Positions 57,901 through 60,900 of a stretch of DNA of 64,000 bases are shown here, piece after piece. Each line of letters begins with the position of its first letter. The first letter of the stretch is position 1. Source of the stretch: Chrysemys picta bellii. Its lineage: Eukaryota. Below the pieces are notes generated by a model. That model had not been told where the DNA came from and searched no databases. It saw nothing but the letters and a program-made list of their open reading frames with translations. The position numbers and the translations under genes are program-made. Where the stretch lies: positions 20,398,001 to 20,462,000 of the forward strand of contig NC_088807.1 of the NCBI RefSeq assembly GCF_011386835.1. Direction: 5' to 3'.

Positions 57901-60900
57901 GCGGGGGAGAGGCGCGGTTCACGGGTCAGCTCAGAGAACGGGTCCCTGGTCTATTGCCCAGCTCTGGAGGGCAAGAGTGGGGTCTAATGGTTAGAGCGGG
58001 AGAAGCCAGGACTCCTGGGTTCTGTCCCCAGCTCAGGCAGGGGAGTGGGGTGTAGTGGTTACAGCAGGGGCTGGGAGCCAGGACTCCTGGGTTCTGTCCT
58101 CAGTTCTGGCAGGGGGATGGGATCCAGTGGTTGACGGGGAGGGGTTGGGAAACAGGATTCCTGGGTTCTGACCCTGGTTGGGAAGGGAGATGTCTCATTG
58201 GCCTGATTCCCTGGGACTTTTCAGACTCAGCCATAGGGGGTTTAGACCATGGGATGCTCTCCTACCCTGCCCACCCCACACCCTGAGCTGCATCTCCACC
58301 CCCGCAGGTTACAGCTCCGTGGTGGCTGACAGCACGTCTGACTCCGTTCTCGGCAGCAGCGGCCCAGCGCTCCCCAGCCAGCCGGTGGCCCACAACCCAC
58401 CCAGCAGCGCTGCGTGAGTACCCGCCTGGCGGCCGCGCCCCCCAGCACCCCACCGGCCATTCACTGACACTCTCTCCTCTCCCCCAGGAAAGAGCCCAGC
58501 GGAGTCCCCGCGCCCCCCAGTGCCAGCTCTGGCCTCCTGGTCCCCATGACGGTGAATACCCCGAGCTCCCCGACCCCTTCCTTCTCCGAGGCCAAGCCGA
58601 GCCAGCCGCTGCTCAACGGCCCGCCCCAGTTCAGCTCCACGCCAGAAATCAAGGTGAGCCTGCCCCCTCTGCGTGGGGGATGGGGGGCACAGTTACAGAA
58701 CTTCCTCCCACCCACCCTGTCTGTCACTTCCAGGCGCCCGAGCCCCTGAGCAGCTTGAAATCCATGGCAGAGCGAGCAGCCATCGGATCCAGTATAGAGG
58801 ACCCAGTGCCATCTCTCCACCTGGCTGAAAGGGGTGAGGACTCCTGGGTTCTCTCTCCAGCCCTGGGAGGGGAGTGGGGTCTAGGGGTTAGAGCAGGGGG
58901 CTGGGAGCCAGGACTCCTGGGTTCTCTCCTTGGCTCTGGGAGGGGAGAGGGGGCTAGGGGTTAGAGCAGGGGGCTGGGAGCCAGGACTCCTGGGTTCTCT
59001 CCTTGGCTCTGGGAGGGGAGTGGGGTCTAGGGATTAGAGCAGGGGGCTGGGAGCCAGGACTTCTGGGTTCTCTCCTTGGCTCTCGGAGGGGAGTGGGGGC
59101 TAGGGGTTAGAGCAGGGGGCTAGGAGCCAGGACTCCTGGGTTCTCTCTCCAGCTCTGGGAGGGGAGTGGGGTCTAGGGATTAGAGCAGGGGGCTGGGAGC
59201 CAGGACTCCTGGGTTCTCTCCTTGGCTCTCAGAGGGGAGTGGGGGCTAGGGGTTAGAGCAGGGGGCTGGGAGCCAGGACTCCTGGGTTCTCTCCTTGGCT
59301 CTGGGAGGGGTGTGGGGTCTAGGGGTTAGAGCAGGGGGCTGGGAGCCAGGACTCCTGGGTTCCATCTCCTGCAGGCTTTCGGGCCTTGCTGGAGCACAGG
59401 AAGGGGTTCCACCCACGCACATGATGTCCCAGCGCAGCTGACTGCATTGTGAAACATGCAGAGTTCCAGGTGAGGGATCCCTGTAGGACCAGCCCCTGCA
59501 CCCCACCCGAGAGGTTGCTGTATCTCGGTGCCGGGCGAGAAACTGTTGCATAAACTGGTTAGCTTTGCGCTCCCAACGCTCTCTGAGGAATCTAACAGGC
59601 TGTCTGTCATCTGTCCCCCCAGCAGACATTTTAATTAGTAGCACGACCTCGCAGCCGCCCTCCAGCCAGCCGCCTATCCAGCTGTCGGAGGTGAACATCC
59701 CTCTCTCCCTGGGGGTCTGCCCCCTGGGACCGGTGCCCCTCACCAAGGAGCAGCTCTACCAGCAGGCCATGGAGGAGGCAGCCTGGCACCACATGCCTCA
59801 CCCCTCGGACTCAGAGAGGATCCGGTAAGGCACAGTCCCTGGGGCGTTGGGGGCTTGGAGAGAGCAGGACTCCTGGGTTCAGTCCTTGACTTTGAGCAGG
59901 GAGTGAGGTCTAGTGGTTAGAGTGGAGGGAACGGGGGGTGGGGGGGTTGCTGGGATCCAGGACTCCTGGATTCTGTCTCCAGCTTCAGGAGGGGAGTGGG
60001 GTCTAACAGAGCGGGGAGGAGATTGGGAGCCAGGACTGCTCTGTTCTGTTCCCAGTAGACGCCGTGCTGCTTCCCCTCCCATCAGGCTGTCTAACCCCCT
60101 TCCCCCCACCCCCGCAGGCAGTACCTGCCCCGGAACCCCTGCCCGACCCCCCCTTACCACCACCAGATGCCTCCACTGCACTCAGACACCGTGGAGTTCT
60201 ACCAGCGGCTCTCAACGGAGACGCTCTTCTTCATCTTCTACTATCTGGAGGTACAGAAGGGCCCCCTCTGCAGGCTAGAGCGCTCTATAGTCCCGCCCTG
60301 TCTGGCCGCCGCTGCCGCCTTTCCCTCGGGCAGGAGGGGCGAGGTGGGTGACTGCTGCCAACGTGCCCCCCCCCCACTGCTCTGGCTTTGCGCATCGGCC
60401 ACCTGACACCCCCCCCCGCAGGTGCGGATGGTACGCTCCATCCCTCCCCCCCATTGATACCTGCAGAGACTCATACCCCCACGCCCCCCCCCCTTGGCCA
60501 CCTGCAATTCGTATGTGCAGGGGGGAACTTCCCTCCCTGCAGGTGTGAATGGTATATTCCCCTCCCCTGACATTGGCAGGTGCCAAGACACACACACACA
60601 CACACACACACACACACACCACACACACACACACACCAGTCTCTGGTATGTGGGAGGGGATCCTCCCCCCACCCCCAGGTGCTGACAGTACTGTCCTCCC
60701 TGACCATCCCTGTGATTGGTACATGCCGAGACATACATCAACAACAGGGGTCAAGGGGTGTGTATGCCAAGAGTTCCCCCCGCCCCCCATGCCCAGAGCA
60801 TTTGGTACATGCTGAATGGTGCTATCGCTTTATTTACCTGCTGCTGGCTGTGTAGCTAGTTGTCTGCCTCCCCCAAAAGAAGACGGCTAATGGTACATTC

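Follow-up and report, generated by a model that had tools for sequence, protein, structure and literature searches.

A minisatellite resembling a CORE-SINE head in the introns of turtle CNOT3, and its relation to human MSR1

We describe a family of tandem repeats in a 64-kb stretch of the genome of the turtle Chrysemys picta bellii (NC_088807.1, positions 20,398,001 to 20,462,000, forward strand), referred to below as the window. The basic repeat unit is 73 bp long, and the array considered in most detail (58837..59362, + strand), referred to as the focal array, lies in an intron of CNOT3. We regard it as probable that the family is an intronic minisatellite of variable copy number that derives from the head of a CORE-SINE (a kind of short interspersed element, SINE), was seeded early, grows in place, and has its orientation shaped by splicing.

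According to this explanation, each 73-bp unit would be one tRNA-length head of a CORE-SINE (MIR type), joined tail to head with the next, and a dispersed family with one shared junction would already have existed before turtles and crocodilians diverged. A site that has been seeded would expand, contract and homogenise in place, perhaps by replication slippage or unequal exchange, so that the copy number at one site differs between species. Transcription of CNOT3 would carry the arrays into the pre-mRNA, and splicing would take them out along with their introns. The excess of sense copies would most likely reflect selection against antisense copies, and the arrays would otherwise be neutral. 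The tandem build, the homology to a SINE head, the location in introns, the sites kept across species, the differences in copy number, the homogeneity within arrays and the splice signals of the antisense strand are results described below; slippage, selection as the source of the bias, and neutrality are inferences.

The repeat unit and its resemblance to a SINE head

For the focal array, Tandem Repeats Finder (TRF) gives a period of 73 bp, 7.2 copies and 92% matches. The array consists of head-to-tail SINE-head units that are 94% identical to each other, and it contains a single CpG, against 48 expected. A 19-base core of the unit, AGCCAGGACTCCTGGGTTC, occurs 55 times in the window when up to three mismatches are allowed, against 0.04 occurrences expected from dinucleotide shuffles. 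Units are counted using a hidden Markov model (HMM), which was built from six focal-array units and scanned over the window and the orthologous loci of other species. In the window, the model identifies 63 units (52 on the + strand and 11 on the - strand), which amount to 3.7 kb and cluster into 26 sites; eight matches lie in the focal array, and the largest arrays contain seven to eight units. These figures agree with an earlier reading of the same DNA, the original prediction, which had estimated a unit of about 72 bp, roughly 50 occurrences, and arrays of up to about eight. Besides 73 bp, periods of 57, 66, 75 and 87 bp occur in the window, and TRF also reports higher-order periods of 128 bp (62585-63064) and 147 bp (53247-53523). 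All 26 sites have the same tail-to-head junction, in which ...GGCTCTG is followed by GGAGGGGAGTGGGGTCTAGTGG..., and the tandem junction of the unit includes ...CTGGGAGGGGAG.

CORE-SINE/MIR-type elements were recognised in the window by their CORE motif, which occurs there only three times. When the window-wide consensus of the unit is compared with the heads of these three elements, its scores are attained by 0, 0 and 5 of 2000 shuffles, respectively. In particular, the solitary CORE-SINE in PRPF31 (36385..36530, + strand), whose head had already been named as a match of the unit (at 36395), is one of those for which none of the 2000 shuffles attains the score. The clearest link between an array and a SINE is found at 46608..46900 (+ strand), where two units run unbroken into a CORE-SINE head and a CORE body. 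Apart from this site, the single unit at 26802-26849 is the only one that ends in a SINE body; no SINE body is found in the flanks of 24 of the 26 sites, including those of the focal array. Thus, the unit resembles MIR/CORE-SINE retroposons in having their tRNA-like head, with the AGTGGTTAGAGC and CCTGGGTTC motifs included, and differs from them in that neither the CORE domain nor the LINE-related tail (LINE, long interspersed element) follows it. Moreover, these retroposons are interspersed as single copies, whereas the units described here are in tandem.

The original prediction also noted motifs that resemble the A and B boxes of tRNA genes, and this holds for their arrangement: in the window consensus, the A-box core AGTGG begins at position 7 and GGTTC follows at position 44, which is a tRNA-like spacing of 37 nt. 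It does not hold for the quality of the B box or for a match to tRNA models. The B-box-like consensus, GGTTCTCTCCC, differs at two key positions from the canonical GGTTCGANNCC, of which there are only two in the entire window. No tRNA model is matched in the window at the Rfam gathering score or by ARAGORN, and none matches the array at expectation values (E) up to 10; a tRNA origin established by direct recognition was rejected on these results. The unit is therefore a tRNA-like SINE head in a decayed state, and the SINE-head origin given in the original prediction is supported. In view of the degenerate B box and the lack of any tRNA model match, it is doubtful whether the unit acts as a promoter for RNA polymerase III (Pol III).

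Since a single junction is found at all sites and SINE bodies are few, the tandem form must have had one origin and spread later. One conceivable route of this spread is ready-made insertion, in which Pol III, starting from the A and B boxes, produced transcripts of several SINE heads that were then retroposed by a LINE. This would account for the identical junction at all sites, in turtles as well as in the gharial, and it fits the A-to-B spacing of 37 nt, which suits a tRNA-type promoter, and the site at 46608-46900, where two units stand ahead of a full SINE. However, most sites have neither the SINE body nor the LINE-derived tail that retroposition requires, the promoter would have to work with the defective B box described above and without any tRNA model match even at E = 10, and no target-site duplications are seen at the focal array. 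In addition, array-specific variants and the 92% identity within arrays indicate growth in place. We therefore consider ready-made insertion highly improbable and retain growth in place from early-seeded sites.

Satellites of this build, termed SINE-derived satellites (sSat), have been described in squamates, and their existence outside squamates was left open (Vassetzky et al. 2023, Mob DNA, PMC10702118). The two systems are alike in several respects: the tandem units are cut from part of a tRNA-headed SINE, with the region of the promoter boxes included; the loci are many, dispersed and mostly short; and homogeneity increases with array length, while copy number varies among related species. 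Some squamate arrays finish in a longer unit that continues into the remainder of the SINE; in the window, this is clear at 46608-46900 and at the single unit 26802-26849, and absent at the focal array and most other sites. They differ in the source SINE, which is of the CORE-SINE/MIR type here and Squam1-3 there, in the hosts, which are turtles and crocodilians here, and in the unit, which here comprises the whole head (73 bp). Furthermore, the loci described here are intronic, lie in gene-dense, GC-rich DNA and are common to species separated for more than 250 million years (My), whereas most squamate variants look lineage-specific. The papers on crocodilian satellites that were consulted contain no description of anything resembling the SINE-head unit, and a protein search with an open reading frame (ORF) read through an array gave no matches. 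The present family extends SINE-derived satellites, so far known only from squamates, to turtles, crocodilians and another SINE superfamily. It is also a case in which minisatellite sites have kept their introns for more than 250 My although the number of copies at each site drifts, and a useful system for studying both the birth of tandem repeats from transposons and the limits that splicing sets on their orientation.

Position, age and orientation of the arrays in CNOT3

The CNOT3 transcription unit, from the exon of the 5' untranslated region (UTR) to the end of the 3' UTR, extends over 44186..62463 on the + strand. It is defined by a CNOT3 mRNA contig of Pelodiscus sinensis (L001), which aligns in 18 blocks over this interval, and by AATAAA at 62434. 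Exons of CNOT3 are found at about 49.4-61.7 kb; for example, the one at 53628-53846 shares 97% identity with CNOT3 of the kiwi and 95% with that of the tenrec. The focal array occupies the first two thirds of intron k-l, between exon k (58728..58833, ending in ...LHLAER) and exon l (59625..59825), both of which are located by tblastn with Mauremys CNOT3 and by the Pelodiscus mRNA. Because the mRNA contig joins 58833 to 59625 and contains no repeat units, the focal array is entirely intronic in CNOT3 and is removed by splicing. The donor GT lies at 58834-58835 and the array begins at position +4 of the intron (58837), so that the earlier statement that the repeat supplies the +4/+5 bases of the donor was right in substance. 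A role of the repeat as maker of the donor site was also considered and rejected: the gharial has no array at this place, yet its donor reads GTAAGGAGG, and therefore the repeat did not alter the donor consensus.

Orthologous CNOT3 loci were taken via CNOT3 proteins, anchored by their exons, and scanned with the unit HMM. The scan gives 55 unit matches (46 sense) in Mauremys mutica (L003), 48 (44 sense) in Pelodiscus sinensis (L008), and 20 weaker ones (17 sense) in the gharial, Gavialis gangeticus (L002); TRF detects no tandem arrays in the gharial locus. There are no matches in the crane Grus japonensis (L005), and the single match in the lizard Elgaria (L007) lies outside the gene, so that this model finds no units in crane CNOT3 or inside lizard CNOT3. 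The mole Condylura (L004) and the macaque Macaca fascicularis (L006) have one marginal match each.

In exon-anchored maps, the window, Mauremys and Pelodiscus agree in which CNOT3 introns hold units and in how these units are oriented, and the gharial largely agrees with them. In particular, an antisense array in intron b-c is kept in all four: it lies at 50074..50317 in the window (- strand, about 3.3 units, after the exon ending in ...KKLQ, the only antisense array inside the gene as seen by the HMM), at 11041-11365 in L003, at 11087-11205 in L008 and at 10769-10992 in L002. When the units are masked, three arrays of the window are found to lie 4-36 bp from conserved blocks that also adjoin units in the gharial. 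The sense units at 57416..57537 (+ strand, HMM) end 20 bp before the block that contains exon h, and the gharial has units 28 bp ahead of it. Similarly, the sense array at 59849..60053 (+ strand, about 2.8 units, HMM) ends 4 bp before a conserved block and the gharial units 11 bp before it. The array at 62585..63064 (+ strand, TRF and HMM), which consists of shortened 57-bp units with the 128-bp higher-order period and lies about 120 bp downstream of the polyadenylation site of CNOT3, begins 36 bp after a conserved block, and the corresponding gharial units begin 35 bp after it. The tandem junction is also identical in the units of Mauremys, Pelodiscus and the gharial. Since sites and junction are common to turtles and the gharial, both the family itself and the majority of its sites in CNOT3 are older than the turtle-crocodilian split. 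In one published source, this split is dated to about 250-270 million years ago (PMC4000948), which would make the SINE-head family more than 250 My old in reptiles.

Note that between the window and Mauremys nearly all of the non-coding sequence is alignable, at 85-92% identity; between the window and the gharial, alignments are found only around exons. We also note that the distance from the first to the last coding base of CNOT3 varies among species: it is shortest in tenrec and opossum, at about 6 kb as taken from a table, amounts to about 10-12 kb in crane, mole and macaque and to 14-17 kb in turtles, and reaches 20-22 kb in gharial and lizard. The SINE-head family makes up a visible share of the CNOT3 intron sequence of turtles.

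Copy number, in turn, changes readily at a given site. With identical flanks, the focal array has 7.2 units in the window, 2.2 in Mauremys and 3.6 in Pelodiscus, and it is absent in the gharial; its origin thus lies in turtles. The sense array of intron c-d (51300..51523, + strand, TRF and HMM) is small in the window and in Mauremys, with about three units in each. In Pelodiscus (L008 12110-13639), it has about 20 units that are 97% identical and represents a large lineage-specific expansion. Units of one array have a mean identity of 0.92, against 0.77 for units from different arrays of the same species and 0.79 for units of orthologous arrays, and the arrays carry private variants. Because identity is 0.92 within arrays as against 0.77 between them, the arrays expand and homogenise in place, as has been described for the SINE-derived satellites of squamates (PMC10702118).

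The orientation of the sites is strongly biased in CNOT3. As the original prediction had noted, the units there are mostly sense: 11 of the 12 sites inside the gene are sense, or 12 of 13 when the downstream array is included (p = 0.003, binomial), and elsewhere in the window the two orientations stand at 7 to 6. In antisense orientation, every unit has CTCTAAC, which agrees with the branch-point consensus, and about 24 nt later a pyrimidine run ending in CAG (CTCCCCTCCCAG); neither of them is present in the sense unit. Read in this way, the antisense unit would be a ready-made 3' splice-site module, and antisense arrays within introns would act as decoy acceptors that selection purges; sense arrays would be harmless or mildly helpful. 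The sense bias is thus likely to exist because antisense units carry decoy acceptor signals.

The opposite emphasis, in which the sense arrays are themselves retained as intronic splicing enhancers or as modulators of transcription, has to be considered here. Intronic G triplets aid the splicing of small vertebrate introns, and the sense unit has six G runs of three or more; the focal array contains five motifs of the G-quadruplex (G4) type, so that the arrays might act through G runs in short GC-rich introns or through G-quadruplexes and R-loops. The strong sense bias and the conservation of positions beside exon borders for more than 250 My would also be expected under such a function. However, copy number varies freely between species (2.2-7.2 units at the focal site, 3 to about 20 in intron c-d), and the absence of the focal array in the gharial, and of all arrays in the crane, has not entailed loss of the gene. 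Furthermore, orthologous units diverge approximately like the flanking intron (about 90% against 85-92% identity, by a rough count of one unit), and the slow rate of substitution in turtles and crocodilians can account for their persistence. For these reasons, we consider a retained function unlikely and prefer the interpretation of a minisatellite that is tolerated in one orientation.

Several observations weigh against this interpretation, nevertheless. The antisense array of intron b-c has persisted at its place in all three turtles and in the gharial, although simple selection against antisense copies should have removed it. The binomial test of orientation may be inflated if the sites are not independent of each other. 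The proximity of many arrays to exon borders, together with six G runs per unit, may point to a role in intron definition. Finally, the explanation does not say how body-less units with one and the same junction came to occupy so many sites.

Relation to human MSR1

Human MSR1 is a repeat of 36-38 bp that is densest on 19q13, where its copy number by the PRPF31 promoter affects expression; its origin has been placed after the bird-mammal split (Rose et al. 2016, PMC4725990). The repeat is clinically relevant through PRPF31 retinitis pigmentosa and through cancer risk at the KLK locus. The original prediction proposed that MSR1 aligns with the present unit and descends from an ancient amniote minisatellite of this kind, retained regionally on the orthologous chromosome. 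A consensus of MSR1 was not found in the published text, as it is given there as a figure (PMC4725990). The comparison is therefore based on the consensus quoted in the original prediction, which is not a curated one, and on unlabelled mammalian sequence.

Against this quoted consensus, the unit matches at 27 of 30 positions (unit positions 18-47; z = 4.3-5.1), a score attained by 2-5 of 5000 dinucleotide shuffles. In addition, CNOT3 intron b-c (after ...KKLQ) opens with MSR1-like units in macaque and mole, and these match the turtle unit at 25 of 30 positions, a result that 1-4 of 1000 shuffles attain. Two further MSR1-like pieces of the macaque show no significant match to the unit. What stands of the proposed alignment is therefore a core of about 30 bp that matches beyond shuffles; the period and the rest of the unit do not agree, and only unit positions of about 20-50 match MSR1. 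By comparison with shuffled sequences, the similarity of the core is real, and it is most simply explained if both repeats descend from related SINE heads. This significant core, common to MSR1 and a CORE-SINE head, gives a lead on the origin of MSR1.

As systems, the two repeats are alike in that both are G-rich minisatellites spread across the same gene block (PRPF31-CNOT3-TMC4), share the core GGGGCTGGG.GCC.GGAC.CCTGGGT, and are often in sense orientation, beginning right after donors. On the other hand, the period of MSR1 is half of the 73 bp of the unit, and MSR1 has neither the A-box segment nor the 3' half of the B box. Those mammalian copies that are compared here are degenerate, and the arrays of the window are intronic or downstream of a gene and not at the PRPF31 promoter.

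Positional evidence was sought in two introns. In intron b-c of CNOT3, the reptile units are antisense and lie deeper in the intron than the mammalian MSR1-like unit, and no significant reptile counterpart of the mammalian unit is found at the intron start: 45-954 of 1000 shuffles attain the scores, and positional orthology of this unit with the reptile introns was accordingly rejected. The second is the TMC4 intron after ...FYLKK, which is made up of degenerate MSR1-like units in macaque (L006 28470-28737) and mole (L004 24948-25220) and has 1.5 SINE-head units in Mauremys (L003 33140-33284) and Pelodiscus (L008 36247-36391). All four lie on the - strand of their loci, are sense, and start at the donor. 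One of four TMC4 introns is occupied in turtles and two of four in the macaque, and because intron occupancy is this high, the overlap is no more than chance would give. The co-occupancy is thus suggestive yet compatible with chance, with a probability of about 0.3-0.5 by our own rough estimate. TRF finds no tandem arrays in the mammalian introns with MSR1-like units, and autocorrelation gives borderline peaks only, at lag 39 in macaque CNOT3 and lag 70 in macaque TMC4, with nothing in the mole.

With these results, two histories can be compared. In the first, an amniote-wide minisatellite of SINE heads has been kept on the 19q13-orthologous block, where human MSR1 descends from it in shortened form and perhaps tunes expression by its copy number. 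The significant core is in line with it, as is the fact that about 38 bp in MSR1 order remain when two segments (about 22 and about 13 bp) are cut out of the 73-bp unit. Shorter forms do arise within the family; the 57-bp units at 62585-63064 are an example. The age of more than 250 My in reptiles and the TMC4 intron, occupied in sense from the donor in macaque, mole and two turtles, can be added. However, the period is 73 and not 36-38 bp, neither crane CNOT3 nor the interior of lizard CNOT3 has units, the mammalian unit of intron b-c has no significant counterpart in reptiles, where the units are antisense, the single co-occupancy in TMC4 is expected by chance, and the two other macaque pieces are not significant. 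Moreover, fewer steps are needed if MSR1 is taken from 37 contiguous bp of any MIR-type head, and the published origin of MSR1 after the bird-mammal split argues against inheritance from an amniote ancestor. Consequently, the descent with regional retention and the role as a copy-number modulator of expression that had been proposed are not supported, and we judge it quite unlikely that MSR1 is such a descendant. The same low probability is given to a form of this history in which MSR1 would be the halved descendant of a CORE-SINE-head minisatellite that already occupied introns of PRPF31, CNOT3 and TMC4 in the amniote ancestor, so that the 73-bp arrays of turtles and crocodilians and the 37-bp arrays of mammals (for example, in the TMC4 ...FYLKK intron) would be loci that have stayed identical for more than 300 My. 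Taken by itself, direct descent of MSR1 from the SINE-head minisatellite has a small chance of being correct.

In the second history, MSR1 and the reptile unit are independent tandem duplications of related CORE-SINE/MIR heads, and hence cousins through the SINE. The shared core sits between the A and B boxes, in the part of the SINE head that the CORE-SINE heads of the window have as well, the two periods are unlike (73 and 36-38 bp), and the family is absent from bird and lizard CNOT3. SINE-derived satellites have, moreover, arisen repeatedly and independently in squamates (PMC10702118). A point on the other side is that the mammalian MSR1-like units fit the turtle unit better than they fit one macaque MIR copy or the SINE heads of the window, although this comparison is unfair to single decayed copies. 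We hold separate origins to be a serious possibility, at somewhat less than even chances.

Other arrays and neighbouring sequence

The remaining larger sense arrays inside CNOT3 are found by both TRF and the HMM on the + strand. They comprise an array of about 3.7 units in intron e-f (53241..53512), which has the 147-bp higher-order period, one of about 4.2 units with a period of 75 bp (55814..56120), and one of about 2.9 units in intron h-i (57979..58188). Outside the gene, an array of about three units with a period of 75 bp (26914..27136, + strand, TRF and HMM) lies upstream of the TFPT/PRPF31 pair and adjoins an inverted CORE-SINE at about 26700-26860.

PRPF31 has its exons at 34983-41752 on the + strand, and a TFPT-like sequence, recognised in stop-to-stop ORFs, lies on the - strand at about 33.3-33.75 kb. 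TRF and the HMM find no SINE-head unit in the bidirectional promoter interval between them (about 33.8-34.9 kb), the position that human MSR1 occupies by the PRPF31 promoter. The interval contains C-rich repeats of 33 bp/151 bp and short G-rich repeats (33797-34086 and 34474-34676).

Other minisatellites are present in the first half of the window. A regular G-rich minisatellite at 27860-28506 has a 49-bp unit in 13.5 copies with a 95% match and is unrelated to the SINE-head unit. At 18480-25624, several kilobases are occupied by C-rich minisatellites based on TCCA and CCCT, with periods of 16, 37, 78 and 175 bp and a strong negative GC skew; they end at an assembly gap (a run of N at 25648-26147). 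On the - strand, long ORFs with CCHC zinc-knuckle and integrase-like motifs at 6400-9600 probably represent a decayed retroelement with long terminal repeats. Finally, at least three exons that encode immunoglobulin domains of the leukocyte-receptor-cluster type lie on the - strand at 3-3800, which fits synteny with human 19q13.4.

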